A DNA stretch of 64,000 nt from Cyanophora paradoxa CCMP329 (Eukaryota > Plantae > Glaucophyta): assembly GCA_004431415.1 (NCBI GenBank), contig QPMI01000569.1, forward strand, positions 62,001 through 126,000, read 5' to 3'. Below, one piece after another: positions 134 to 55,291 of the stretch (position 1 is its first letter; each line of letters starts with the position of its first letter). Made by a program: the position numbers and the translations under genes. The notes under the pieces were generated by a model, which saw nothing but the letters and a program-made list of their open reading frames with translations, had not been told where the DNA came from and did not search any database.

Positions 134-2741
134 GCGGCGGCGAGGTGGTGCGCACGGTGAACGTGCTGGACCGGTGCGCTCCGGCCCGCGGCCTCCCGCG
201 CCGGCGCCTCTCGGGGCTCTGACGGCGGCGCAGGAACCCGGACCTGCCGCACATGAGCGTGGCCGTCGTCCGCCGCTCCTTCTCCGAGGCGGTCCCGCAG
301 CGCGGGGCGGGCGGCGGGGAGGCGCCCGAGGCCGACCCCGCGCTCCTGGGCGACACAAGCGTCGAGCCGGCCCCGCCGTCGCCGGCGCCCGGCTCGAAGC
401 GCGGCGAGGGCGGCGGGGGCGACCCGGCGTACGAGGACGACGACTTCGAGAGCCACGACGCCGGCCGCGGCGCCTCGCGCGGGCGGCCGCCGAGGGCGCC
501 CCGCCGGAGCCGGCCCCGGAAGCCGAGGCCGCGGCGGGGGACGAGGCGCCCGAGCCGCCGGAGCAGCCGCCGGCGCCGCCCGAGGCCGCAGCCGCCGCCC
601 CGCGGCGGCCCCTCCGGAGGAGGAGCGCGGGGGAGAGCAGGCGGCGGAACCGGCGCCCGAGCCCGCGCCAGCCGCGGACGCGGCCGAGCCGGAGCCGGAG
701 CCCGAGCCCGCAGCTGAACCGGAGGCGGAGCCCGAGGCGGCGGCCGAGGCACCAGCGCCGGCCGAGGCGGCGCCGGGGCCGAAGCAGAGGCGCCGGAGCC
801 CGAGGCGGAGGCGGCGGAGGAGGAGGAGGAGGCGGCGCCCCCGCCGCCCCCGCCCCCGCCCCGCCGAAGCCGGCGCCGGCCGCGAAGCCGGCGGCGGCGG
901 CCCGCCGGCCCCGCGATGCAGAAGAGCCAGTCCGAGCCGGCCATCCCCCGCGCCCGCCCCGAGACATCCCCTCCCCGGCCTCTCCACGGTGCCTCCCCCC
1001 GCCCCGCGCCCCCGCAGCGCCAGCGCCGGGGCGGGGGCGGGCGGGGCGTGACGGGGCGGCGGCAGGCGGCGTCGCTGCCGCGGGTGGTGACGGCGTCGAC
1101 GGCGTCGCGGGCGAACGCGTCGGGGCGGGGCGGCAGGTCGGCACGCCCGCCCCGGGGCGTACAGCCTCGAAGGACCCAACCGCTGGGCTCCCGCGGCTTC
1201 ACCATGCTCTCCCGCAAGATCCCCACCGCTCCCCCACGACTACAGTCCGCCCCGCCCCGCCCGCCCGCCCCGCCCCGCCCCGCCCCGCCCGCCCCGCCCC
1301 GCCCCGCCCCGCCCCGCCCCGCTGAGCGGGGGCTAGACCCGGTGGGCCCCGGGCGTACAACCCGCCCGTGGAGGTCGGCGAGAAGCGCGGCAACATGTGG
1401 ACCAGCACCAAGGGTCACGCCCTCGCCGTCAAGCGTCCGCCCCGCCCCGCCCCGCCCCGCCCCGCCCCCCCCCCCCCCCCCCCCCCCCCTCTTCGCCGGG
1501 CGCCGCCCCGCCCGGGCCCCGCTGAAGCCGTCGTCCGTGGACGCAGCCTCGCCCGTCCCCGACGTCGGCAAATGTGCGGCCACCGCCCGCCGCTCGCCCC
1601 GCCCCCCGCCCCGCCGGGGCGCGCTGACGGCTCCTCCGCGTGGCAGACAACCCGAGCTTCGAGGCGGTCTCGACGATGCCGTCGCCGCCGCGGCAGCGCT
1701 GGGGCAACGAGCGCCGCCTCAAGCACGGGCCCTCCGGTGCCCCCCGCGCCCCCGCCCGCCCCGCCCCGCCCCGCCCCTTGCCCCCGCCTGACGATCCGAT
1801 GCGCAGCGCCGTACCTTGGGGAGGGGTCCGCCCGCGAGAATCTCGGCACCTTCTCGCCGGGTCGGCGCATCCATGCCCCCGTGCCGCCCCCTCCCCGGGC
1901 CCTCGGCGCCTGACCCCGCCGCGCCCGCGCCCGTGCAGGCCCGGGCATCTACGACCCCAAGTACGAAGCCCAGCTGGTCCGCCCTACCCCTCTCCGCTTC
2001 CTCCCCCCTGCGCTCTCTCGCCCACGTACCCCCGCAGCCCACGGGGAAGACGTGGAAGTTCAGCAAGTCGAAGAACCACGGTATCCCCGGTGCGCGCCTG
2101 TTCCCGCCCCGCAGCGCAGTGCCCCCGCCCTGCTGACCCCGCTCTGCCCCACCCACAGGCATGACCGAGCGCGTGGTGCGCCCGGCCGCTGTAGCCCCCT
2201 ACCGCCCCGCTCCAGCCCCCAGCCAACCCCCCCGGCAACCAACCCCCCCCCCCACCCACCCCCACCCCGCAGATCCAGCGAAACGCGACCCCGGGGCCGG
2301 ACTACCAGCCGCCCATCCTGGGGCGCACCACGCCGGCCTTCAAGGTGCCCCTTGCCCCCGCACCGCCGGCAGCGCCCCCGCCGAGCCTCGTGGCCGCTGC
2401 AGTTCGGGGGCGCGCCGGCGCGGCTGGACGCGATCAAGGACACGCGGAAGGTGCCCTTCATGGGGGGCGAGTTCGCGTCCGCGTTCCTCGGCACCTGCTC
2501 CCCCGCCAAGGTCCCGCATCGCGATCCGACCCGCCCCCGGCCCCGCTCCGCCCCCGCTCGATCCTGAGGGGCTCGCGCGCGCGCGCAGCAATACGACGTG
2601 CGGGACAGCGGGTTCGAGGCGGGGGCGGGGGCCGTGCGGGGGGCGAACCCGCCCCGCCAGAAGTTCGGCAAGGGCGCCCGCTTCTGGAGCGCCCTCGACA
2701 GCCCCTTCCACTCGGGCCTCGCCCCCGCCCCCAAGGGCTGA
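134..2741 (+). CDS. Multi-exon SHIPPO/ODF3 (sperm-tail PG-rich repeat)-like protein; 5' end probably lies outside the window
   Basis: Spliced exons give PG-repeat motifs (PVGPG[A]YNPP, FSPGPGIYDPKY, TPGPDYQPP, SPAKQYDVR) after a Pro/Glu-rich region. The gene ends PAPKG* at TGA 2739-2741. Several single-base frameshifts in G/C runs (e.g. ~1352) look like consensus errors. Confidence 0.55.
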
Positions 2742-4261
2742 GCTGGGGCCCCACCCCGGCCCGGGGCGCCCCGGCTGCCTGCAGACTCCGCCCCGAAGTG
2801 CATTGTAATTGACCGCTTAGATCTCTTTGACCCGAGTCTGTTGGCCGCTTTGCAAATGATGACCTCCTAGGCCTGAATCTGGGGCGGGGGCGGCAACATG
2901 TACAGCTGCGGTACCGGTCGCTGGGGCTTCAAGCTCGTGATCGGTCACTGAGGGGGGCAAGATTTGTCACGTTAACGTTAACGTTTTTGACGTTCATCTA
3001 TTCAACGGGTTACCGTATGGGAGCTAGCATGCATGAATATTATAATTATATATATATAAGTATCGATATCATGGTACTACGGTATAATGATCATAGCATC
3101 GTTAGAACTTGCAATTTAATCGTCGCATCCGATGATCATCACAACCGGTTCCGTCGGATTACCGTTTACGTAGTACCGTCGAATTCGAAATGCGAACTCG
3201 AATACCTAAGTTATTAATTCGAGTTTGCAATTGGTCGACTTCGTTGGCTTCGGATTCTCCGGATCCTTGCAGTGGCCTCGGGCCTGCACATTCTCGATAA
3301 CAATCACAACGCATGTACGTATGCACTCGCGCATCCATGTGTACGCGAAAATTTCGACAATTTCGAGTACTACGGTATTCGAATACATTTAATTTGACAA
3401 GTGCAATAACTAGTTCTCTTGAAGAAGACCGCATCGATATCATCAATGTCGATATTTACAGCACTGTCATCTGCATGCTGCCAGGCTGCATCATGGCATC
3501 TACTTCGAATGCCAGCTGGAGGTCTTGATCCAACTTACATGTACAGATCAGATCTGAAATAAGTGCCTAGAAGCTAAGCACGTGAAGGCTATATATCTTG
3601 TTTTTTAACTAACAACTGTAGGCAGTTTTTAACTGACAACTGTAGGCAGACCTAGAATTCGAAATAACATTAACGTGTGCGCGTTGCGTTGCGCACTCCG
3701 ATCGTATCTGTCGAAATCTACTGGCCCCGGAGCCTTGATTCCGGAGCTGCCCGAAGGCCTAGGCACGCGGACCTGGGCGGGGCTCAGCTCGATTTCCGAA
3801 GTTCTGAAGGAAAAAAGAGTCCGGGGCGTGAGCTCGAGAAACAACGCCGAAGCTACGCTGCGGGATTTACAAGCTGAAGTGGCCACGAAGGCGACTTCGC
3901 ATACTGCAAATACGGTGCATCTCTAAATCAACAATCGAGATGTTGACGCAGTCGCGATCGATGATCAAGTCAAGACATATTGATCACAAAAAAGGAAAAC
4001 CCGAAATGAGCAAATGTGGAACCGATAAGACGATAGGAAATAGAAAGCGTCTCATGGAAACGAAAGGCTCATGCTGAGCTACAAAGGCAAAATGACGAGA
4101 TGAAAGAACTGTCCAACAGTACTAGTCACTGAGTCATGTACACCACAGCACGCTACTGGCTATATATAGGAGACTCGCATGTATATGAAGGCGACCGCGG
4201 CTCTTGTGAGGATGCCGCGGCCGTGAGTGAACCCAACGGTCCGGTTACGCGGGCGTAGGGC

Positions 4262-39817: not shown

Positions 39818-40486
39818 CCCCCGGCCCGGCCCCCGGCGCCGGCTCGTAGGTAGCCATGTAGCGAAGTTTTACACTATTATGGGCTTAGCAGCGCTAGTCG
39901 ATCGTCATCGCCATTGTCATCGTATACATTTATCGTGGCATGTACTCGAATCTTCTCGAATTTCCTCAGTTTTCGTGAGGAGGGAGGGGCAGGGCCCGGC
40001 AGGCTCTCGGGCAGCAACCGCGGTGGGGTGGGTACGGCCGCGGTACTGCCAGGAGAAGGCAGGCCCGAGGGGCCGGGGGCGGTCAGAGTAATTGCAGAAG
40101 GAACGCGAATTTCGAACGGCATACCGTACGTAGTTAGCTCAGCGGCTATAGCTAGCTATAGATATATATAGAGGCCTATAGCGCTAGCTACTGCAGCTGG
40201 GCTAGACTTTCGTCTGCAGCAGCATGCGCAGCTGCATGGCTTTACATTTCGTCTTGTTCTTCTTCTAGATATCGATCTCGCACATATGCATGCACATGCT
40301 TTCTCGTCTCAGTTCTTACAGTAAGATAAGATTCAATTTCAAAGCTGCACTCGTACAATATATACGCGTACGTTTACGTAAACGTAAACGATTAACAGTG
40401 ATTATACATCAAGATAATTATAATACGTTTACGTTTGCGTTAGTTACGGAAATCTTCGCGCGCAGGGGCAAGCCCGGCGGTTACGA

Positions 40487-43400
40487 TTAGACGCCGAGCA
40501 GGCGCCGCACGCTCAACCAGGAGCTGGAGGAGGCGAACTCGATCCCGTAGCCGAGCTGCAGCGGCACAGCGGGTCAACACGCGCACAGCGCTCTCCCTTC
40601 CGGCACGCTAGTGCTGAAGGCCTCAAGGGGCGATCTTGGGACGACAAGGCGAGGCAAGGTGCGGAGCGGGCGGGCCCCGGCGTGGGGGGAGTGAGGTAGG
40701 GTTTGTGTGTGGGTGTGTGTAGGGAGGGGTGGGGGAGGGTAGGGGGGCCGTTTGCTTTTTGGGGGTCTAGGGGGTGCGGGGGTAGCTAGATAGGGGTGCG
40801 AGGTTGGAGAGGGGTGGCAGGGTTTGGGGAGGAAAGGGGGAAGGGTGGGGGTTGGGAGGAGGAGGAGGGGGGGGAAGGGGGGATGGGGATGGGGTGGGGG
40901 GGGGGGGAGGGGCGCACGGCGAGCAGGGTCTTCAGGGTGGCGTCCACAGAGGCGCGGTCCGACTTCTTCTCCCGCGCGGACATGAGCCCGTCTGCGCCCC
41001 CGGCTCAAGCGCTCCGCGGCGAGGCGGGGCGGGGCGGGGCGGGGCGGGCAGGCGTGGCGGGGGGCGGACATGGCTTCAGCAGCTCGTGCGTCTTCTTGTC
41101 GACGGTCTTCTCGCCCCACACGACGCCCTCCCTCATCTTGGAGACTGCGCCACCGGCACCGCGGGCCGTCAGATATCTCGGGCCGCGGCCGCGCGCGCCC
41201 GGGGCGCCCTCGTCGACGCCGCGCGCGGGCGCACGGGCCCAGCTGTCGTGCACGCTCTCCGCCAGCAGCTCGCGGAGCTCGTAAAGGCTGCCGAGGTCAT
41301 GCGGAGGAGAGGGGTCCCGGCGAGAGATGCGACCTCAGCAACAGAAGACCATATGCATCGACAGAGCGCGCGCTGGCCACGGCCAGACACTGACCTTGGG
41401 TTGAGCGTTCGATGCTCCGCCCCGGGGACCCACTGCAGCCCTCTCAGAAGACAGGCCTGGCGGCGCCAAGGGCAAGCGCCGGACGTGGAAGCAGGTGCGT
41501 CCTCTCACCATGAGCGTGTAGCCACCCGGCAGCAGATCCTTGAATCGTGCGTTCTCAGGATGAGGCTGCAGCGACCTGCTCGCTTTGTCCTCGTCGTTGC
41601 AACTGGACGTCGACGTGCGCGTGATCTTGTAGCCGAGCGCCACGATGATGCGCAGCAGGTAGATCACAATGTTCTGTCACAGCGCGTCAGGCGCGGGTGC
41701 GAAGCCATCGGCCAGCGGCCAGCGGCTTTGCATCGCGATACTCCGAGCGCTGCGCGCTTCTCTACCTTGTCATAGAGCTTGTCTTTCTCCTCCAGCTCCT
41801 TGTACGGGACAAGCTGAAATTGCAGTCAGAACAGGGCTATCGTCATGATCAGGCATTCGGACAAGATGTCGATCTAGAATTCGAACGAGACCGCAGCGCG
41901 GCCAAGCTGAAAGGGAAAGGCATTGCACCAGCGGGTGCTGCTTAGGGCCTTTGCTTTCGTCGTCGTTGCGCGGCCATCCGTACCTGCGAAGAAGACGCGC
42001 GCGCAGCAATCAGTGGACGGCGCTTGCGAGGGACCGCCGGGGCGCGGCTGCGCACCTGTAGCCCCTCTGGAGGCAGCCGAGGCTCCAGCGGTCGTGGATG
42101 ACCTCGCCCAGCAGCTCAATAATGTCCTCGAACGAGAAGGCTGCCGATCGCGACGTGCGAGTGCAAGAGGCCCGCGAATCAGAGCGGCGGCGGAATACGA
42201 GGGCGCGCGCGCGCACCGGGATCTCGGTCGCTGTTCTGGATCTTGTCGATCGATATCCCGCCCCAGGAGGCGACTGGCGAGTACTCCGAGATCGCCGTCT
42301 TTTCGTCCTGCCCGCGATCGCGGCGCAACAGATCTCGATGTCAGCGTTCGCGCGCACGGCAGCCGGCGCACGCCCCGCGGGCCGGGCGGCCGGCGCTGCC
42401 GACGCGGGCTGCTCGGCGGCCATTGCACCAGGGGGTCGAAGCACTCCTGGGGGAAGGAGGCCACGATGCGGACGGCCTCGTGCTTGATGTGGGCGAGCGA
42501 GTGCTGCCCCTGCCTCCCGCTCACGGAGAGGTGCCAGCTGATGACCGCCACCAGCTCGTCGAAGCGGATCGACTCCGAGGAGAGCTGCGCGCGCCCCGCG
42601 AAATCAACAAGACGCGACGGCCGCATGTACATGTGAAGGCCGCTAGCGCTGCTCGAGCTGAAGGCGGCGAGCTCGAGCGCTAGCGCGGCGGGCGCACCGT
42701 GGATGGCTGCCTGGTCTGCACGAAGCTCAGGTCCTGCAAGCACTGCTGCAGCTTGTCCGCCACCTCCAAGATCTAATCGCAACGCGGGCGACGCGCGCGT
42801 GCAACGCGGTCATGATCAGGCCAGAAGCGAGCACGGGCTTGATCGCAGGCCTAGGGCGGGGGACCGGGTCTGGCCCGCACCTCGCTGTACCCGTCCTGGA
42901 GGGCCTTCCTGCCCTCGGCCGTCCTCGGGGCGTGCAGGGGCCTGCTCTCGGCCCGTGCACCCCAGGTCACCCGCCCCTGGCTGCGCACGGAGGCGGCAGC
43001 CGCCCCGGCCGGCGCCGCGGCCTCGCGATCGAGCTCCGCCGGCGCCTGCAGCAGACCGGCGGCGTCAGAGTGCACTCGCGCGCGGGCAGCTAAGCGAAGC
43101 GCACGGGGCCCTCGCGGGCGCCGGCGCCCTCCGCGGGGGCGGGGCCGGACTCGGCGCGGCGCATCGGCTCCTGGAGCTCGCTGCTGCGCATGGCGCGGAG
43201 GAGGAGGTCGAGGTCGACGGCGAGCTCGAGGGCGCGCGCCACTTGGCCCGAGTCCTTGTCGTACTGCGCGGCGCGCGGCTCGAGGCCCGCTGGGCGCAGT
43301 CGGGGGGATGGTTCGGGGGCGAGGGCGCGCGCCTTGGAGAGCTGCTGAAGGGTCGTCTCGAGCCTGAACGCCTCCAGAAACTCTTGCTTCTGCGCGCGGG

Positions 43401-46400
43401 AATCCGAGGCCAGGCGAGCTCGATCACGCGGGCCGCGCCGCGCCGCGCCGCGCGCGGAGCGAGCGCACGTCGCTCTGGCGGTCGCGGGACTTCTTCGCGA
43501 GCCGGCTGACGATCTTCTCGATCTCGTCGTCGTCGAGGATCGGGTCCGGCAGGTCGAGCCGGAACGCGCGCGTGAACCTTCGGGATCGGGACGCGCGCGC
43601 GTCAGCCGCTCGTCGCGGAGCGTGCACAGCCGATGCGCTTGTTTGCAGACCAGCTGAAGCGGGTCGGGGGATCCCCCGCCTGCGGCTCGCCATCCGCTCG
43701 CTGCCCGTCGACCGGGAGTGTCTGCCCTCGCTTGGCGAAGCCCGACACGGGATTGAAGCGACCAGCGCCCATCTCTCGGAGAAGGGAGGCCGACCTGCTC
43801 GGGGACAGATTATAGTTATCTCAGCCGTTTGTGGCGGCGTCAATGCCTTCAAGCTTAAGCTGCTGCAATTGAGAATTCGAAATAGCGCTAGAAACTTAGT
43901 TAAATGTGTTTACCGGCCGAATCGAAAGAAGGAAGGCAAGACAAGCTGAAACAGGACCTGGGCGCGAAAAAGAAATAAGTGTTCGTAATGGAACGAGGGG
44001 GCACATGCACAGGCGACGAGCAGTGGCGAACCCGGGGGTACGCGATGCTCGGCGGGATTCGAAGGCGCATGAGGGGGTGCAGCTGCGGCCGCAAAGGAGT
44101 CCGCGTCCGCTGCTCGTGTGCATTTCACAGAAAACAACGTCCGCGCACCAAAACATTCGCCGGCTCGTCTCGACCCGACTCTTCTCCTCTCGCCTCATTT
44201 TCCTTCGGCTTGCCCAGCACCTGACGCAAATTTAGAAGAGCCCGCGTACACAGTGTCGCGGGCGAAATCTAAGGCTGGACAAAATCTCCTAAACACGCAC
44301 GCGCCGGGCTCCTAAAGCCCTCACGCTGTCCGTCCGAAGCTCTCATGATCAGATCATATGATCCGATCAGACGGCTCAGACATATGAAAAGCGAGCCACT
44401 GGATTCGAACCCGAGTCTCTAAATACGCCGAAGCGAACTGCCGGAATTGAACCCGGGTCTCTACGAACGGCAAATTCTAAGGCTGCAGCCGCCTAAGATT
44501 TCGCCCGCGACAACAGCAATGTCCGTGCGCAACGGAGGAATTGAACGTAAACGTGCCTTGAGAACAACGTAGAAGCCCAGCGGTTTCACCCTCACTTGCA
44601 AGACTTGCGCGAGAAGGCGCTTTTGGCCCACCCCAACAAAACGCTTGAGCCCGTGCCATGCTCGCGCCCTAAGACTTGCCGAGCCCTCCGCAACGGGGTC
44701 GTCCACGTACTGCAGAGGAGAGTTCAGCTCGCGCCGCTGCACGAAGGTTTCGTAAGACCGCGCCTCGAGATACACGACGTCGCCTTGCGTCAGCATCTTG
44801 AAAACAAACCGCTTGAACTCCTCCTCCCCGCTGCGAGTTCGAACGAGAATTTGGTAATTTGGTTTCCTAGAAGTTGCAAGTGCACTGATCGAGGGGGAGA
44901 AGCGCACTGGGCTTCGCCCTCCACGGCGGCCTTGATGACGGTCTGCTGCCGCGGCAAGGCGAGGGCGGACCTGCCCCCGAACCCCGCCTGGCTTCCAACC
45001 TCTTTCCAAGGACCCGGCAGATCGAACTTCAGCTGAGAGCATTAACGACGCGGGGGCCGAGTTTCAATGAATCGATCAACCTCGAACGCAATTTCGAGCT
45101 TTGAGATTCGAACTTCACGTGCACCTGAATTTCGCCCTTTTTACCCGGCTTGATGAGCCGACGCGAGGAGGCATTCGCGTTCGGGCGATCGTTGTCCGAG
45201 GAGCCGAGCGGGGGCGGCTCGGCCTCGGCCGTGCCGGGGGCGCGCAGCACTGCGAAGACGCGGTAGCGGAGGAGGCGTCCGATCATCGCGAGGTTCTCGG
45301 AGCCCGCCCTGCGCGAGCGAGCGGCGCCGGCTCAGTGCTCCGCTCGGACGAGCGTTAACGTAAGCAGGGGGCGCGGCCGCTCGGCACTGGCGCCGGCGAG
45401 GGGCCACAAGCGGGGCGGGCGGGCGCACTGCAGGCTCCGCTCCTCCTCCTCGTGCGAGTCCGCCTCGTCGCACGCGTCCGCGTAGTACTTGTTCTGCATG
45501 CGGGCCGCCGCCGCCGCCGCCGTTGTGCGCGATCAGCCATAGAGCAGTGCGATAGCAAGCAAGGGCGCTGCTAAAAGAGGTCTAGAGATATAGATTGAGG
45601 TTTAGAGCGTGCGCACCAGAATGGCGATGAACATGTTGAAAGCGATCCAGACCTGCGCCCGGGTCATTTCAACGCACGGCCGGCCGCGGGCGGCCGCGGG
45701 CCAGGAAAAATATTCAGTGGGGAGAGTATGGAGGGTAGCTACAGCGCCGGAAGCAAGGGAGCGGCGGATGCGGGGGCAGGTCCAGCTGCAGGGGCCGGGG
45801 GCACGCATACGCACGACGAGGATCATGAACGAGAAGAAGTAGACCATGCCGGCGACCGGGGAGGCGCTGTTGATGTCGTCTGAGGCAGCGCGCAGCCATC
45901 GGCGAGATATACATTCAGATGGCTGAAACTTGGGCTCGAATTCGAAACCGCAGACAGAACCCGCACCGTACTCAAAGTCGCTAAGAGAATTCGAATGAAC
46001 GAGTCAAGGGCGGGCAGTCAGAGAGAATGCGCGAGCGCGCGTGGCCATGGCAAGGCTCGCACCCGCCGAGGAACCGGAAGAGGCTCGCGAACGACGCCGT
46101 GAAGTTGTGGAACTGCGCGCGCGGTTCGCGGCTTCAGAGTCGGCGCCGGCGCGCGGTCGCTGTGTACGTTGGCTCTGCTGGGGCTCCGAGAGTATATTCG
46201 GATCCGGAGTGATCGATTTTTGGAAAGGCGGGGAGCACATGCAACTCACGCGCGGGAGCTGGTAGCCAAAGATAATGTTTCCTGCCGCGCGACAATTAAC
46301 AACGTTAACAGAGCGACCATGCATTCTAGATATGATATTGGGGTGCGCGCGCGAGCGCCGGGGGCACCCATGAACGCGTAGCCGGCGAACATGACGAAGA

Positions 46401-49400
46401 AGCAGGCGACGAACGCCAGGAGGTCCCACCGCGCGAAAAAGAGCGTCCGCCTGGCATGCGCACAGCGTCAGAGATCGGCCGCGGGCCCTGGCCCGCCACG
46501 GGCAGCCCCGGGGCGCGTGCACACCAGATGACGGCGATCCTGCGCTCGAGGGAGAGGAAGAGGAAGGTCCAGATGGCGGTCATGAGGACGTTGATGCCGG
46601 CCAGCTCGGACGCCACCTCGAAGAGGCGCCGCGCCTCCTGGAAGTCGATGTAGCGGCCCCGCGCGTCCACCTCCAGCTGCGCCCCGGCGCGTCGACGTCG
46701 TCCCCGGCCGCGGCCCCGGGCGCGGGCCGGCGCCGCGGGCGGCGGATCGGATCTCGGACCTCCTTCTGGATGCCGCGGCACGTCCTCACGTAGGCCGCCT
46801 GCGGGGCGGCGGTCCGTCGGCGTCCTGGGCCTGGGCAGAAGGCGTGCCGGGGCGGGCAGGGCCGGGGTGGGGCAGGGACGGCGCACGACGTATCCGATCA
46901 TGACGAAGTAGAGGACGACTGCGAACATCTGCGGGGACCGCGGCCGTGGGCGGGCCGAGCTACACGTCTGGATCTGCGGCGGCGGGGCGGCGGGGGCGGG
47001 GGGCGGGCGGGCCTCGAGGAGGTCCCAGAGGCTGCGGAAGAAGTCGTCGAAGGAGGCGTCGGCGGCGAAGAACTTGCGGAAGAAGGACATGTGCAGCACG
47101 CCGTCCCGCCCGATCTGGCCCCGCCCCCGCTCGGGCCCCCGCCTCGCCGGTCGAGAGCGCCGGGATCCTGAGAGCTCGGGAGCGAGCACCTTCGAGATGC
47201 TGTTGAGCCCTGCCGCGCCCGATCGCGACCCAAAGATAACCGCGACGTGCAGAAGTAAGAACGCGGACGCCACGAGCGTGAGCGATGCGGGCAGCACACC
47301 GTACATGGTCACGACAATGCAGAAGAGAATGCTGCGGCGCGAGGACAAGGACAGGTCATGACCATGTTCATGGCGGCGCACGTGCACGCGGGTGCGGTTA
47401 ATTATAAAGTACCACGCACCAGAAGCCGTATGTCGTCTGTGCCAAGCAGCGCATGGACGTCAGAGCTTGGAGCCAGTGAAAAGGACGGCAAAGTCAAAGC
47501 GCGGCTTGGAGCACCGGATTCTCCAGCGTCTCGAGCTTGAGAGTGCGAACGCGATATGAAGGGATCATCGCCCCTGCGCATGCGCCGCGCGCGTGTGATT
47601 GCGCCCCACCGATCGCGCGTGGCTCGCATATGCATGCGGCGCACCAGAGTTCGGCAGCTCGGCGACTGTGCGCGGGCTCTTCAGGTTTCCGGTGGCAATT
47701 GGAGATTGAAGGGGGCGCGGGGCGCACGGAGCTCGAGGACGACGAAGAGGCGGGAGTGGCGGTTGTAGAGCGTCGCGTCCATCGCCACCGCCCGCGTCGA
47801 GTCTGCGCGCGCCGCCCCCGAGCCTCGGAGTCAGACCCCGCGGAAAGCTCGGACCCAGCGCGGGGCGAGGCGGGCATGTGCAGCACCGTCGATCCACTTG
47901 TCCTGCTCGGCGTCGTCGATCTGAACGCCCCGAGCAAATTGGGTCGGCGGCCGGCCGCGGGCGGTGAAGGTGGACGGGGGCGGGCGGGCGCGGGGCTCGC
48001 CTGCCGGAGCGCGGCGGCGGGGTCGCGGCTCAGGACGAGGGTGTGGTGGCCCGAGCCGTAGTCGGGGTAGTACGCCGTGTCGCGGAAGTAGGCCCAGCTC
48101 GAGAGCAGCGGCGAGCCGCTCTCCTGCGCATGCCATGCCGGCCGCCGGCGCACGTGAGCGGCCCGGCGCGGGCGACGGCGGCGCGGCGGCCCATCCAGCG
48201 CCAGCCGGGGCCGGGCTGCACCTCGAAGGTGTACTCGGCGCCGGAGGCGGGCCCGCGGAAGGGCCGGCGGTCGGCGTTGGAGGAGCCGTGGCGCTCGTGG
48301 TACGGGGGGAAGCACGCGCCCTCCGCCCCGAAGAGGGCCGCCAGCAGCGCCGGCGGGCGGCTGCTGCACTCCTCTGCCGGCACCCGCTCCACCCGCACCT
48401 GGAGGGCGAGGGGTGGAGGCTCAGAGGGGGGAGGACCGGGGGGTGAGGGGGTGAGGGGGCTGGGGCGGGGGGGGTGGAGGGGGGGGGGAAGGGGAGGGGG
48501 ACGAAGCCGGGCGCCTGGCGCAGGCGGAGGAGGCCGACGGGGCGGAGGTAGTCGGCGGTGGGGTTCGACCCCGAGGTGTCCAGCAGCAGCGCCGCCGTCC
48601 GCCGCGCGAACCTCAAGAAGTCCTCCCGCTGCCCCCGCCGGCCCCGCACCCCGGCGCCCCGGTCAGCCGGGCGGCTTCGCGTCGGGGGGCCGGGGCGGGC
48701 TCGGGCCCCGGGCGCGCCGTGTTGGAGGCGAGGAAGGCCTCGCGGTCGCTCCCGAGCTGGACGACGTTCAGGAGGCCCCCCGCCCCCACGTACTGCGCCG
48801 CGTGCTCGTGCGCCTGGTCCACCGGCAGGATCTGGGCGGGAGGGGGGGGGGGGCGGGGGTAAGGGGGGTAAAGGCCGATACCAGCGCGCGGCGGCCGCGG
48901 GGGGCCCGGATCTCGAGCGCTGCTGGGGGGCCCGTCCCCGGGGCGGGGGCGCGCGGATCCGGAGGAACGGGGGGCCCGGGCGCACGGTGATGACGAGGCC
49001 GAAGAAGAGGGCGGAGAGGCAGGCGAAGGGGGGCAGGACCTGGTAGAGCAGCTGCCGCCGGTACGTCCGCAGGAAGACCTCCGCCCGCCGCACGTTCAGC
49101 TGCGCCGGCGCCGGCGCGCGCGACGCCGTCAAAACAGCGCCGGCCGGCCGCGGCCCGGGGCAGCCGACGCGCGCGGGCGCCCCGCGTGCCGGGCCGCGAA
49201 CCTTGATGTTGGAGAACTCGCGCGTGATGACCTGTGCGCGCACGCGACGCGGCGGCGGCGTAAGCGGGGCGGGGCGGCGCGCGCGGGCGCCGGTTGACTA
49301 CTGCGGACCTTTTGTGTGTGCTTGAACACGCTCCCCTCCTCCTCCTGCAACGACCCCCTGCGGCCGCCCCCGGCCGCCGGCGCGGGTCGACATCCGTCCT

Positions 49401-49545
49401 TGGCGCCGGCCTCATGATCAGAATCGAACGTTAACTTGACAGCTGCAGCGGGCCCGGGCCCGGCGCCTGAAGCTGCTTGCGCGTAGGCCGGATCCTGCGC
49501 CGCTGAGCCGGCTCGAGCTCCTTCCTCGAGATCACGCGGTGCCAT
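40487..49545 (-). CDS. Polycystin-2/TRPP-like cation channel with two C-terminal RyR repeats (PKDRR-like architecture)
   Basis: PKD channel motifs: GLLRLRQ|VRV..C, WID..TRAV..TLYN, LWDLLE, YIDF, DLLAFVACFFVMFAGYAFM|GNIIFG, FHNFTASF, YFFSFMILV|VWIAFNMFIAIL. RyR repeats: ELLGEVIHDRW...HPL|LVPYKELEEKDK...IVALGYKI and ELLAESVHDSWA..KMREG..WG..KTHELLKP..KKSDRASVDATLKTLLA|LGYGIE. Linker exons can be joined in phase; a single transcript is inferred. Confidence 0.65.
44254..44512. mobile_element. 259-bp MITE with TGT...ACA ends and a 4-bp TSD (Ginger-like ends), inside an intron of the channel gene
   Basis: 22-bp TIRs TGTCGCGGGCGAAATCTAAGGC / GCCTAAGATTTCGCCCGCGACA (1 mismatch). TSD ACAG at 44250-44253 and 44513-44516. 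Confidence 0.8.
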
Positions 49546-50292: not shown

Positions 50293-53200
50293 CTAGAGGG
50301 GCGGCAGGTCGGCGCCGGGCCGCTGCCAGGGCATGGCCGTCGGCGTGACGGTCGAGCCGAGGCGCAGGGCGCCCCGCGAGCCGCTCCGCACGGGCGCCGC
50401 CCGCGGGTGCAGCTGCGGCGAGGCCGCGGCCGAGGGGGCGGCGGCGGCGGGCAGGGCGGCGGCGGAGGAGGGCGGGGAGAGGGGCCGGCGCCGCTGCTGG
50501 AGCGCCGGGCGAGGCGGACGGCCCCGACGGCGGAGCCGGCGGCCGGGGAGGGCGGCGAGGGCGGCTCCAGCGCGCCAGCGCTCGAGTCGCGCCGGTGCAG
50601 CGTCACCGGCCGCGAGACGGGCACCGCCCCGCCCGGGTCCCCTCGGGCGCGGGGCGGGGCCCGGCGCGCGGCCCGCGCGGAGGGCGAGGGCGGGGCCGAG
50701 GACGCCGCCGCCGCCGGAGGGCTGCCGCACGAGGCGCCGCGGGGGCGAGCGGTCGGCCTGGCGGGAGGAGGCGCGGGGAGGCCGGCGCCGGCGCTGTCGG
50801 AGCGGGCGAGGGCCGAGGCGCGCGCCCCCGCGAGGAGCGCGCCACCGGAGAGGATGGACGAGGCGGAGGCGGAGGGCGCGAGGGCCGGCGCGAGAGAGCC
50901 CGGCGCCCCCCGCGCCCCTCCCCCGCCTGCGCCTGCGCCGGGAGCGCGAAGCCGCGGGCGCCCGCCGCCCCGCCGCCCCGCCAGGGCCCGGGACGGGGGC
51001 GGGTACGACTCCGAGAGGGACGCCTCGGGGGGGGAGAGCGGGTCCAGCCTGGGGCGGGAGGAGGAGCTGGGGGTGGGTACGACGCGCCCGAAGCCGGAGG
51101 AAGGCCCCGGAGGGGAGCCAACCGCGAGGCCTTCGTCGCGCGGGTGAACGTTCCTCAGGGAGTCGCGCGCCAGCAGGGGCGCCGGCGGGGCCAGGCTCCC
51201 CTGCGACCCCGAGGGGCCGAGCCGCGCGCCCGGGCCCCGCGCGGGGCTGTAATCGCGCTCCAGGGGCGGCAGGCCCTCGGCGGGGGCGGGGCCGGGGCGG
51301 GGGCGGGGCCGAGGTGGCCCAGGGCGTCGGGGCCGACGAAGGGGGCCGGCGGGGCGAGGCTCGACTGGGAGGGGAGGAGCCGGGGGGAGGCGGCCCCGGC
51401 TCGGGGAGCGGCCCTCCGCTCTAGCGAGCGCGAGCGGGCGGCGCCGCCGGGGCTTGGCGGCGACTCCCGCGCCGAGCTCGCCCCCCCCGCGGCCCCCGCG
51501 GGAGGTGCCTGGGGCCCGGGGCCCCCCTCGAGGTCGAGGGGGGCGAGGAGGTGGCCCAGGGAGTCGGGGCCCACGAAGGGGACCGGGGGGTCAGGCTCCC
51601 GTGCCGCGGCAGGGCGGCGAGGCGGGGCGGGGGCCCTCCCTCGAGCTCAGCTCCGCCGGCAGAGAGTCGGCGCGGGCCCGCACGGCGCGCTTGGGCGAGG
51701 AAGGCGGCGGCGTGCCCGGCGCAGGCGCCTGCGCCGGGGCGGGCCCGTGGCTGTAGAAGTCGGGCGGGGGGCTAGGGGCCGCGCCGCCGCCGCCGTCGTC
51801 GTCAGCGGAGCGGGAGACGGCGAAGCGGGGGAGCCGGCGGGCGAGCGCGTCGGCGAGCGCGGGCCCGGGAGCGCGGAGGGCACCGAGCCCGAGCGCGCCC
51901 GCGGCGGGCTGCCGAAGGACGAGGGCGAGGGGGCGGCTCGACGAGGCTCGGGCCGGGCGCTGGGCCGTCCTCCGAGACGAGGAGGGCGGGGCGGGGTATG
52001 GGCGAGGAGAGCGACGTCGAGCGGGCGCGGACCTGCCGCTGGGGCGAGGCGGGAACCGCCCTGGGGCGCGCGGCGCGCGTGAGGGAAAGCGAGAGGGAGG
52101 GCGGGGGGCGGGGCGCACGGGCCGGGGTCCGGGGCGTGCCCGGGGGAGAGGGGCGCGTCGGAGCCCGGGCCCGGGTCCGGGGCGCCCTCGGAGACGACGA
52201 GGGAGGGACGGCGGATGAGGGGCGAGAGGGCCCGCCCCGCCCCGTGGCCCCCCGGCGAGGCCGGGCCCAGCGCCGGCAGCGCCCTGCGCCAGGTTAAGGA
52301 GGAGAAGCGGGCGGGGGAGGGGTACGCAAGCTCGCCGGTGCGCGAGGTCGATGATGATGCCGAGGGCGCCACCGGGATTCGAGCCGGCGAGCTGCGGGCT
52401 CCCCGTGGGCGACGCCGCGCGGGGGCGGAGCGGCGGGCCGGCGTCGGAGTCGCTGCCGCGGCGGCGGGCGCCCGGCGGCTCGCGCAGAGCGGGCGGCTCG
52501 AGGGCCGGCTCGCTGGCCCGCCGCCGCGGCTCGGGCCGCCAGTGCGGCAGCCCCAGCGGCGAAAATCGTGCCGGCGCGCCATCGCCCTCCTCCTGCGCCC
52601 CGGGCCGGCCGGCCCCCTCCTCCCCCTCCTCGCCGCCCTCCTTGGCGGGGCCCTCGTCGCCCTCGCGCTGCTCGTCGATCTGGGGCAGCCGCGGGGCGCC
52701 CTCCGCCCCGTGGGCCCCGGAGGCGGCGAGGTCCGCGGCGCCCGCCCGCGGAGCGCGCGACGTCCTCCGCCGCCGCCGCAGCCGCCGCCACCGCCGCCTC
52801 GGCCTCCACCCGCTTCCTCTGCGCTCGGGTCGGATCAGATCTGAGCGGGCCGGATGCGGCGGGATCGGAGGCGGGGCGGGGCGCCTGCTTGCGGACGCGG
52901 GCGGCGCGGTTGGAGACGGAGCGGCGCGCCGCGCGGACGATGGCCGCCGCGTGCCCGCCGTCCTCGAGGCGCGCCGCCAGGCCCGGGCCCAGCGCGCACA
53001 GCGCCCGCACCAGCGCCCAGCCTGCCCGGGTAGGCGGCGGTGAGGATGGGGAAAGGAGGCTGGGGGGCTAGGGGCACCGAAGAGGCCGTCGCGGCGGGGG
53101 CGGGGGCCTGGGCGGGGGCGGGGCCCCCGGCGCCCTCTCCTGGCCGGGCATCGTGCTGGGGTCCGAGTTGCGGCGGGCCCGGCCCCCGCGCTCCGCGATC

Positions 53201-55291
53201 CCCTCCAGGCCCTGCGCTCCCTCCGCTGAGCGCCGGGATCGCGGGGGAGAGGGAGGGGGGCGCGCGCGCCTCGTCGGGGGCGCCCTGCGAGGCGGCGCGG
53301 GCGACGCTCGAGCGCCGAGTCGGCGACTTGCGCCCCTGCCGCCCCTGCCGCCCCCGGGGCCCCGTCAGCAGCGGGGCTGGCGGAGGCGCGAGAGGGCGGG
53401 AAGAGCGCGCGCGGAGGACGCGCCTGGGCGCCGGAGGAGGAGCGGGAGAGGGGGCGGGAGGGGGAGCCGCCCGACGGGCTCCGCTTCACGCTCCGCTGCA
53501 TGAGCCGCTCGTACGCCGAGTTGCTGCCGGACGGATGAGGGGGGAAGGAATGGGGAGGAGCGAGGAGGGGGTACCTGATCATCTCGACGGCGTCGGTGAT
53601 GAGGCGCCGCGGGGGCGCCCACTGGCTCCGGGGTCGGCGGGGGTACAGGGGAGAGCGGGGAAGGGGAGTCGGACCGGCTTGGGGGCCTCGAGGGCGGCCA
53701 CGTAGATCTTGGCGCGCTTCCCCTCCGCGAGCCCCCGGGCCTGGGCGGGGCGGGGCCGGGCCGGGCGCTCGGCGAGGCTCGGGAGGGGTGCGAGGGGTGG
53801 GGCGGGGGGTACCTCGCGCAGCATCTGCTCCGCGCGCCGGCGGCGGCGCTCCATCCTGCGTCGAAAGTTGGAGAGGGGTACTGCGCGTATCAGCCCTCGG
53901 AACGCACGCGTCCTCAGAGCTCATGAGGCCGCCGATGAGCGCCGCGGCGCCGCCCGGCTTGATTTCTGCGAACGGAGGCGCGCTCGGAACCCGGTCTCGC
54001 TCTCGAGGAGGGGGGGGGGTACGCACCCTCGAGGGGCCGGAGGACGTCACGCCCCAAGGCGGCATCGAAGCGCGCGATGGTATCGTAGAGCACGCGGAGG
54101 AATCCCGCGTACTTCGCCTGTACCCCCCTTCCCGTGAGACACAATCGGGGCGCAGGAGGGGTACGGGGGCACCTGGGAGATGCCGAGGGTCCAAACGTCG
54201 ACGATCTCGAAGATGCAGCGGAGGAAGCGGGGGCGGTTAATGAACTCTTGCCCGCCGCTGGGGGTGCGGCGTCAGGGAAGGGGAGGCGCGGCGGGGAAGA
54301 GGCGCGCCTGTCAACGTCCCAGTCCTCGACGGCCGTCTTGAGGGCGTGGAGGGGGTCCCATCTGAGGGGGTACAGGTCAGGGGTACAGCCGTCGAGAGCG
54401 CGCTGGGCGCGGACCGGTCGTTCAGGGCACGGTATACCGCCGCGTGGAATCTCTGCGGAAGGGGTACGTTGATCTCGTGGGGGCGGGGGAGGGGGGTACA
54501 GAAGGGGTCAGGGGGGTCGGGGCGCTGCCTTGTAGCGGTCGAAGTAGAGGACCTCGTCCTCGGGCCCGTCCAGTGCCACGGCCCACATCTTTCCCGTACC
54601 CCGTCAGGAGGGAGGGGTACGCCGATCTCGGACGGGGCGGGGCGGGGGCGCGCCCTGCGGAGGGAGGCGAGGATGTCGGGGTCGAAGCGGAGGCTCTCGC
54701 GCGTCAGGAGCGCAAAGTCGCTGCGCGCGGCTCGGATCGGGGGGTACGCGCGCGGGGGGGCTGGAGTAGTACCCGTGGAGGTCCTCGTCGAAGGCTTCGG
54801 CGGCCGGGGGGGAGCCGGCGGCCGGAGGGGAGGCGCGCGGGTCGGGCGGCGGGGGGGCACGGTACTCGGCCCGCAGGACCTCGATGAACCCCTGCGCGCA
54901 GATCGGATCGAATTCAACGATCCGGGGCGAGGAGGGCCCGGCGCACCGGTCCGCGGGGCCGCCGGGCGGTCGACCCGTGCCAAGAGTTGCGGCGCGGGCG
55001 GAGGCGCGCGCGGGTCATCTCGACGAGGGCAGCCGGCGCGTCATCGCGCTCCAGGATCGCCTCTGGGCGCGCGGCGAGCGTCATGCCGTCCACGGGGCGC
55101 GGGGCCGCCGCCATAGAGGCGGAGAGGCGCTTGGCGCTGCTGGCGGCGATGGAGGTCCTCCGCCCGGGCACCGCGCCCTCGGCGCTCGAGCCGCTTCTGG
55201 AAAGGGACTCGTCGGCATCGACGAGAGGCGGGAGCCTCTCATCGGGGCTGCCTTCGAGCTCCGAGGCCTGGACCGGAAGTGGCTCGGCCAT
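50293..55291 (-). CDS. Uncharacterised protein with an EF-hand-like domain and long Pro/Ser/Ala-rich tail (paralogue 2)
   Basis: Spliced core: RSDFALLTRESLRFDPDILASLRR|MWAVA...YFDRYK|RFHAAVYRALND|RWDPLHALKTAVEDWDVD|..INRPRFLRCIFEIVDVWT..|AKYAGFLRVLYDTI. Ends ADLPPL*. The 3' exon structure is uncertain. Confidence 0.6.

Follow-up and report, generated by a model that had tools for sequence, protein, structure and literature searches.

The minus strand between positions 49545 and 40487 of the window, i.e., of the whole stretch of 64,000 nt of Cyanophora paradoxa DNA analysed here, carries a real gene of this glaucophyte alga (Glaucocystophyceae), which encodes a PKD2-type channel with a ryanodine receptor (RyR) tail. 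Most probably it is one gene, and its fully spliced mRNA gives a polycystin-2 (TRPP)-type cation channel subunit of 1,386 residues with the RyR pair in its tail. In kind, it would be a member outside the oomycetes of the PKDRR proteins, i.e., PKD-channel proteins with two C-terminal R domains, which were stated to be encoded by oomycete genomes only (Zheng, Doyle Prestwich, Harrison & Mackrill 2020, PMC7399828). With three paralogues in Cyanophora and one relative in Gloeochaete, this restriction to oomycetes does not hold.

Exon-by-exon phase tracking yielded one open reading frame (ORF) of 49 exons and 4,161 nt, corresponding to 1,386 codons plus stop, which starts with the ATG at 49545 and contains the TAA at 40489-40487 as the sole stop over all 49 exons. 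The encoded order is S1, an extracellular polycystin (TOP) domain, S2-S6 with the pore filter GGDFEY, a linker of approximately 550 residues and two C-terminal RyR repeats. The cytosolic tail after S6 thus comprises approximately 790 residues with the two tandem repeats at its end, and the C-terminus is formed by LGYGIEF, 15 further residues and the TAA. A preliminary description, made from the sequence alone, had placed channel and repeats on the same strand, and both are indeed located on the minus strand within 49545 to 40487.

The GC content of the window amounts to 58-87% in 500-nt steps, and the minus strand of 49545-40487 is split into many short open stretches. Exon assignment was based on RNA-like contigs of X1, X2, and X5 (three runs from two studies), which were aligned together with the contigs of the DNA run X9 over positions 40400-46399. 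Exons upstream of the RNA-covered region, i.e., in the 5' third of the gene, were assigned by a dynamic programme for splice sites and codons, for which the RNA-supported exons served as training set. Downstream of S5, each of the 30 introns ends in GT/GC..AG; GC..AG was observed in three of them (44763-44710, 44556-44221, and 43332-43264), and GTGCGC is the commonest donor in the gene. The introns 44710-44763 (54 nt) and 41145-41234 (90 nt) are multiples of three and free of in-frame stops, and their retention would add 18 or 30 residues, respectively.

When the S4 exon 46676-46525 alone was compared to 1.84 billion representative proteins, a public protein was found at 100% identity, namely EukProt EP00741_Cyanophora_paradoxa_P019782 (gene model tig00021168_g19092.t1, 1,391 aa; in the following P0001). 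P0001 starts at the ATG 49545 and contains ...KKGEIQLKFDLPGPW..., thus the fusion is already present in a public gene prediction. Compared to our exon model, 47 of the 49 exons are identical, and the RNA-corrected gene model mends the other two. P0001 includes a 9-residue exon (FASAYLETR) derived from a repeat in intron 44556-44221, in place of the RNA-supported exon 44709-44557, and it reads through the last donor at 40917, while the RNA-supported last exon 40555-40487 completes RyR repeat 2 (LGYGIEF...). All Pfam and structure-library searches of the joined protein were carried out on P0001 and hence on a protein which differs from the RNA-supported model at these two exons. The parts of the gene are located as follows.

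40487..49545, minus strand: whole coding region (phase tracking; 47 of 49 exons identical to P0001)
49309..49545, minus strand: exon 1 with start codon (MAPRDLEEG...), equal to P0001 residues 1-79 and outside the RNA-covered stretch
48986..49099, minus strand: S1 exon (dynamic programme; the same exon in P0001; alignment with S1 in the Gloeochaete homologue)
47515..48831, minus strand: polycystin (TOP) domain exons, S1 to S2 (Polycystin_dom on P0001 residues 191-360; single-exon match 0.054)
46525..47436, minus strand: S2-S4 exons, including the S4 exon 46676-46525 (PKD_channel 0.013 on the S4 exon alone)
45617..46450, minus strand: exons of S5, pore helix, filter and S6 (46450-46368, 46281-46250, 46112-46063, 45980-45967, 45879-45815, and 45652-45617; RNA contig and PKD2L1 pore alignment)
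45125..45493, minus strand: two post-S6 cytosolic exons (45493-45429 and 45308-45125) ending ...KKGEIQ (X1 record 5 covers 45307-45106; GC content at third codon positions, GC3, 0.85)
45033..45124, minus strand: junction intron, 92 nt, GTGCAC..TCAG, phase 0/0 (splice scores, composition; only unspliced in RNA contigs)
42217..45032, minus strand: linker, 14 exons from LKFDLPG... to ...NSDRDP (joints in X1, X2, and X5, none in the DNA run X9)
44254..44512, no strand assigned: repeat resembling a miniature inverted-repeat transposable element (MITE) in intron 44556-44221 (contig depth, inverted ends)
41509..42140, minus strand: RyR repeat 1, exons 42140-42056, 41983-41929, 41813-41766, and 41673-41509 (joints, contig arithmetic, Pfam on P0001)
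40487..41287, minus strand: RyR repeat 2 and C-terminus, exons 41287-41235, 41144-41070, 40991-40918, and 40555-40487 (joints 41144/41235 and 40555/40918; Pfam RyR 4.5e-4 on the raw piece)

Domains of the channel and of the tail

Four Pfam families were found on P0001, i.e., PKD_channel (PF08016; 103.2 bits compared to a cut-off of 22.4, E 1.8e-29), Polycystin_dom (PF20519; 60.7 bits, E 1.8e-16, residues 191-360, between the S1 exon and S2), Ion_trans (6.5e-11) and RyR (PF02026), the latter twice in tandem with 108.8 bits in two stretches (E 1.6e-31). PKD_channel, Polycystin_dom and both RyR repeats exceed their Pfam cut-offs, and the RyR match, whose absence would have spoken against the preliminary description, is strong. 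RyR/IP3R channel, RIH, MIR, and SPRY domains were not found on P0001 in the same Pfam search. Matches of single exons are sub-threshold but collinear (Polycystin_dom 0.054, PKD_channel 0.013, RyR 4.5e-4, 0.15, and 0.11). Pfam and PDB sequence searches with stop-to-stop pieces gave no channel match, due to the fact that translated intron sequence swamps the short exons.

Among solved structures, residues 233-613 of P0001 match PKD2L1 and PKD2 at approximately 1e-36. The pore was aligned without gaps to PKD2L1 375-511 by phmmer (E 1.8e-19; FRFLGGDFEYDDIN against FRIILGDFDYNAID), and the filter Asp is conserved. Similar to animal polycystin-2 and PKD2L1 (PDB 5z1w, 5t4d, and 5k47), the protein carries the TOP domain between S1 and S2, a gap-free S4-S6 region and pore, and the S6 motif NMF(I/L)AI. 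In contrast to these channels, the filter reads GGD instead of LGD, and the tail of P0001 is without a Pfam EF-hand match and ends in the RyR repeats. In S4 (P0001 residues 480-492, exon 46676-46525), WTFLFLSLERR is found in place of KIFKYISFNK in PKD2L1 and RVFKFLRLN in the paralogue P0003; the basic residues and lysines of S4 are lost in this copy only.

In the tail, the motifs HGxExFKRF, FRFxRS, FRLD, EFLxxFRLE, RFDEL, and SFP of the linker are common to the paralogues and reach to the RyR repeats, and the linker exons gave no match in a word-index search of proteins. The residues 1154-1348 of P0001 match Repeat12 of RyR2 and Repeat34 of RyR1 as a tandem pair among solved structures (approximately 6e-27). 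The pair aligns to RyR2 879-1059 and 2718-2896, with RyR repeat 1 corresponding to RyR2 879-969. An AlphaFold model was built for the last 279 residues of the Gloeochaete homologue from a five-sequence alignment including the protein described here (predicted local distance difference test score, pLDDT, 83.3; predicted template modelling score, pTM, 0.76). This model superimposes on crystal structures of human RyR3 Repeat12 with template modelling (TM) scores of 0.89-0.91 and root mean square deviations of 2.0-2.2 A; the matched structures include ATP-, AMP-PCP-, and dantrolene-bound forms. By this model of the Gloeochaete homologue, the tail is predicted to fold like the Repeat12 clamshell of the ryanodine receptor.

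In the clamshell of the ryanodine receptor, adenine nucleotides are held between two Trp, and the phosphates are contacted by three basic residues (PMC12627627). Similar to RyR Repeat12 (human RyR3 848-1055; PDB 6uhe, 6uhh, and 9l90), the tail described here is a tandem pair with a predicted pseudosymmetric clamshell and both cleft Trp, and the W+15 Arg is conserved as well. Unlike Repeat12, which is embedded in a 5,000-residue receptor, it is located C-terminally on a six-transmembrane TRP-type channel, and two of the three basic contacts differ. In P0003, P0005, P0006, and P0007 (see below) the W+4 position is occupied by Lys or Arg, whereas it is Cys in this paralogue. Judging from these residues, nucleotide binding by the tail of this paralogue is plausible, though supported in part only.

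Relatives in glaucophytes and oomycetes

The same architecture of channel and RyR repeats occurs in two further Cyanophora proteins, P0003 (1,317 aa) and P0005 (1,124 aa), and in P0006 (1,174 aa) of Gloeochaete. The coding sequence of P0006 is a complete ORF without introns (436-3960), flanked on either side by untranslated regions (UTRs), in the 4,886-nt contig L001 of the Joint Genome Institute (JGI) sample 3300017104, thus a single assembled mRNA in a related organism carries the TOP domain, the channel and both RyR repeats. Its partner in the 90% cluster is a protein of the second glaucophyte, Gloeochaete wittrockiana (MMETSP0308 / EukProt), and its GC3 of 0.71 is unlike that of Cyanophora. 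The single channel domain followed by two C-terminal R domains is accordingly present in the ORF described here, in P0001 and in the Gloeochaete mRNA, with the joining splice unseen in the RNA contigs of this locus. The suggestion of the preliminary description that a PKDRR-like fusion is present in a genome which is not that of an oomycete is borne out by these four glaucophyte proteins.

A profile of the Cyanophora proteins finds the PKDRR protein of Phytophthora fragariae (P0007) at 6e-51. Furthermore, the contig L002 (positions 1-2236; Ga0073952_12043348) of a marine metatranscriptome contains one ORF with filter (GDFEYD), S6, linker and two RyR repeats, which groups with Phytophthora and may originate from a marine oomycete-like organism. 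L002 was the one oomycete-like fused contig in a metagenome scan with the RyR module, which otherwise returned mostly short matches of one repeat length (presumably bacterial). When the RyR region of P0003 was used as query of a word-index protein search, P0003 itself was the only match, and the look-alikes found in the Atlas were ordinary PKD channels, without any fused cluster. In a tree of six taxa, comprising the six fusion proteins and no PKD2 or RyR-domain outgroups, the three Cyanophora paralogues form one clade (99/99) with Gloeochaete as sister (100/100), and the oomycete-like pair is placed opposite.

PKDRR proteins have been divided into two subfamilies, depending on whether the C-terminus extends beyond the second R domain by more than 10 (A) or by fewer than 10 residues (B). 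With approximately 15 residues after LGYGIEF in the RNA-supported last exon, the Cyanophora protein is A-like by length, depending on where the end of the domain is set. Oomycete PKDRR such as P0007 resemble it in one PKD2-type channel, the long tail, two terminal R domains, a length of approximately 1,300-1,400 residues and an xRFDE... segment before repeat 1. They differ in host, with only approximately 26-28% identity and most of the linker unalignable, and the gene described here has 49 exons and the filter GGD, compared to AGE in P0007.

The evidence on the origin of this likeness is mixed; common descent of the glaucophyte and oomycete fusions is slightly favoured, convergence takes most of what is left and a small remainder falls to transfer scenarios. 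If convergent, the union of a PKD2-type channel with tandem RyR repeats took place separately in glaucophytes and in oomycetes, and the protein described here would be like PKDRR and belong to another family. This is a substantial possibility, although not the favoured one, due to the fact that the channel core does not resemble Phytophthora PKDRR (28% identity, 93 bits, S3-S6 only) more closely than it resembles animal PKD2L1 (129 bits) and that most of the linker is without detectable similarity between the groups. Common descent is indicated by the same domain order with a C-terminal repeat pair in both groups and by the profile match at 6e-51 mentioned above. In addition, approximately 70 residues just before repeat 1 (xRFDE...) align in a profile comparison of the linkers only (hhalign, E 1.6e-4, probability 51%), and BLASTP gave one continuous glaucophyte to oomycete alignment from this segment into repeat 1.

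PKDRR have been proposed as oomycete-specific and hence as targets for selective fungicides (PMC7399828). In the literature searched, no paper ties Cyanophora to a polycystin or RyR-domain protein, and the occurrence of PKDRR beyond the oomycetes appears to be unpublished; the fusion itself is contained in a public, undescribed gene model.

Transcription and the junction between channel and tail

From the pore exons onward to past the stop codon, the locus is tiled by RNA contigs. The list of joints comprises fifteen, all of them GT/GC..AG on the minus strand; each one occurs in X1, X2, and X5, and the DNA contigs of X9 contain none. Altogether, 29 of the 30 introns downstream of S5 fit the RNA contigs, and the DNA run contains no spliced joint. 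Besides the 15 listed joints, the joints of the microexon were observed directly, and the remainder follows from contig coordinates and depth arithmetic, e.g., X1 record 2 has 510 nt between 42881 and 41673, which is the sum of exons of 75+156+91+85+55+48 nt. The 14-nt microexon 45980-45967 encodes DFEY after the filter residues GGD; in X1 record 5 it is represented by 13 letters placed between 45880 and 46063, in agreement with the bin depths. Separate transcript starts or ends were not seen in the RNA contigs, which cannot reveal transcript ends.

The splice path through the linker given in the preliminary description is mostly backed by the RNA contigs, including the intron 43913-43795 with phase-2 donor and acceptor. 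Its link KKGEIQ|LKFDLPG is in phase with canonical GT..AG in the DNA, and its spliced form was not seen. The assumed donor after QVLQ is not used; the exon continues for another 12 codons as far as 44557, where a GC donor follows. An intron described as 39 nt long actually comprises 66 nt (44148-44083), and the ambiguous junction in RyR repeat 1 could be assigned to intron 41765-41674 in phase 0.

Exon 45308-45125 (...KKGEIQ) is the last one of the channel half, and the tail half opens with exon 45032-44908 (LKFDLPG...). The intron in between has a donor score of 7.3 and an acceptor score of 4.6, both of them values typical of introns in this gene as judged from the other 29, and its composition is intron-like (GC 0.50; codon score -0.27 compared to an intron range of -0.68 to -0.02). 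Exon 45032-44908 lacks an ATG and shows coding composition in the fusion frame only (score 0.41, GC3 0.83; other frames -0.22). Upstream of it, the tail frame is closed by the TAA 45044-45042, and the first in-frame ATG occurs only in exon 44830-44764. The residues HGxExFKRF(xFxML), which are conserved with the paralogues, are located upstream of this Met, the only candidate internal start. In the 31 exons which lead from S5 to the stop codon, GC3 amounts to 0.88 compared to an intron GC of 0.65, and the tail frame is intact across 23 exons and 22 spliced introns. Taken together with the Gloeochaete mRNA, these features point to removal of the junction intron in the mature mRNA, as expected for one gene.

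Several observations weigh against this interpretation. The splice 45125|45032 occurs in no RNA contig of X1, X2, and X5. Coming from the pore exons, X1 record 5 enters the junction intron by 19 nt and ends at 45106; coming from the tail, X1 record 4 and X5 record 14 enter it by 43 nt and 19 nt, respectively, and X2 record 11 (depth 2.7) spans it unspliced from 45035 to 45233. These contigs explain the depth of bin 45000-45199 completely in X1 and X5 and up to a difference of approximately 0.1 in X2, therefore no spliced contig is present there. Additionally, exon 45032-44908 was included as coding and the junction intron as non-coding in the training of the codon model, which results in a small circularity, and P0001, P0003, and P0005 are gene predictions and not cDNAs. 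Finally, two of the five nucleotide-contact residues of Repeat12 differ in this protein, i.e., W+4 is Cys and the Arg of repeat 2 is replaced by Leu.

In the three libraries, the unspliced form of the junction is no less abundant than any spliced form. Unspliced RNA is common there in general, with intron-bearing contigs for 41394-41288, 44556-44221, and 42428-42308 at 30-50% of the spliced depth. Due to this, to the thin coverage (depth 3-9) and to the dropping of minor variants from the contigs, an absence of the junction splice is not shown. Retention of the intron would bring the channel frame to a stop at the TGA 45031-45029, resulting in a channel of 708 residues without the RyR tail.

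It would be conceivable that the locus is one transcription unit from which the junction intron is never removed, so that only the 708-residue channel (...VVNALS) is made and the RyR exons are an untranslated, decaying remnant of the fusion. The exclusively unspliced RNA over 45033-45124 in three runs is in agreement with this, as are the loss of the S4 basic residues and the exchange of one clamp lysine for Cys in this paralogue. We nevertheless consider such a decay improbable, given the intact tail frame with its 22 spliced introns, the GC3 of the exons from S5 to the stop, the good scores of both RyR repeats and the normal splice sites of the junction. Furthermore, a 3' UTR of 4.5 kb with 22 introns would be expected to expose the transcript strongly to mRNA decay; the contigs of the tail are nevertheless as deep as those of the channel.

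Very improbable, in turn, are two adjacent genes wrongly merged in the public model and in the preliminary description, i.e., a channel gene ending near 45029 and an RyR gene with its own promoter which starts from the Met in ...FKMLTQG (exon 44830-44764): the RNA contigs do break within 45051-45106 in two runs and a phase match over one canonical intron has a chance of one in three, but X2 record 11 spans the gap, the channel mRNA has to pass 45029 to reach its stop so that the units would overlap, conserved residues and coding composition are found upstream of the FKMLTQG Met, and the Gloeochaete mRNA and the oomycete proteins hold both halves in one ORF.

For the preferred single gene, the 92-nt junction intron is probably removed slowly or conditionally, and the unspliced RNA would then give the 708-residue channel without tail. 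Combining this with the relationships discussed above, one may speculate that an old channel class, shared by descent or ancient transfer between the glaucophytes of the Archaeplastida and the stramenopile oomycetes and lost almost everywhere else, is controlled here by retention of this intron as a regulated switch between 708 and 1,386 residues. Both parts together are rather unlikely to be true.

Some further observations concern the sequence in and around the gene. A (GGC)n run at 45494-45616, located in an intron, draws RNA contigs of other transcripts (depth 28-67, with many loose ends at 45500-45521), and for this reason the depth there is uninformative on the gene. None of 10 loose contig ends checked maps within the window. 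At 45228, a contig departs in all three RNA runs with more than 255 further letters which are absent from the 64-kb window; no AG is present there, and an alternative exon was considered and set aside in favour of a k-mer probably shared with another GC-rich transcript. The MITE-like interspersed repeat at 44254-44512 has terminal inverted repeats of approximately 22 nt and a DNA contig depth of 500-1,100 compared to approximately 29 nearby, and an origin from a tRNA or a short interspersed nuclear element was discarded after ARAGORN and Rfam gave no match. Upstream of the gene, the region 50500-53500 shows 82-87% GC and a strong positive GC skew.

Proposed working of the channel and its meaning

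By analogy to PKD2, four subunits would form the pore, and the four C-terminal RyR pairs would each fold as a Repeat12-like clamshell under the channel. These clamps could represent a regulatory module which modulates gating. Most likely such a clamp would bind a ligand, e.g., an adenine nucleotide, or dock a partner, and in this way couple the state of the cell to gating. In the flagellated alga Chlamydomonas reinhardtii, the flagellar polycystin PKD2 is likewise a PKD2-type channel and has a large extracellular loop; it is not known to carry RyR repeats. A flagellar role of the Cyanophora channel, by analogy with algal and animal PKD2, is conjecture.

With glaucophyte members at hand, the question of how the RyR repeat module arose in eukaryotic channels can be tested by phylogeny. 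As a small six-transmembrane channel with a clamp which in animal RyR binds adenine nucleotides and dantrolene, the protein could furthermore be a simple model for the regulation of a pore.

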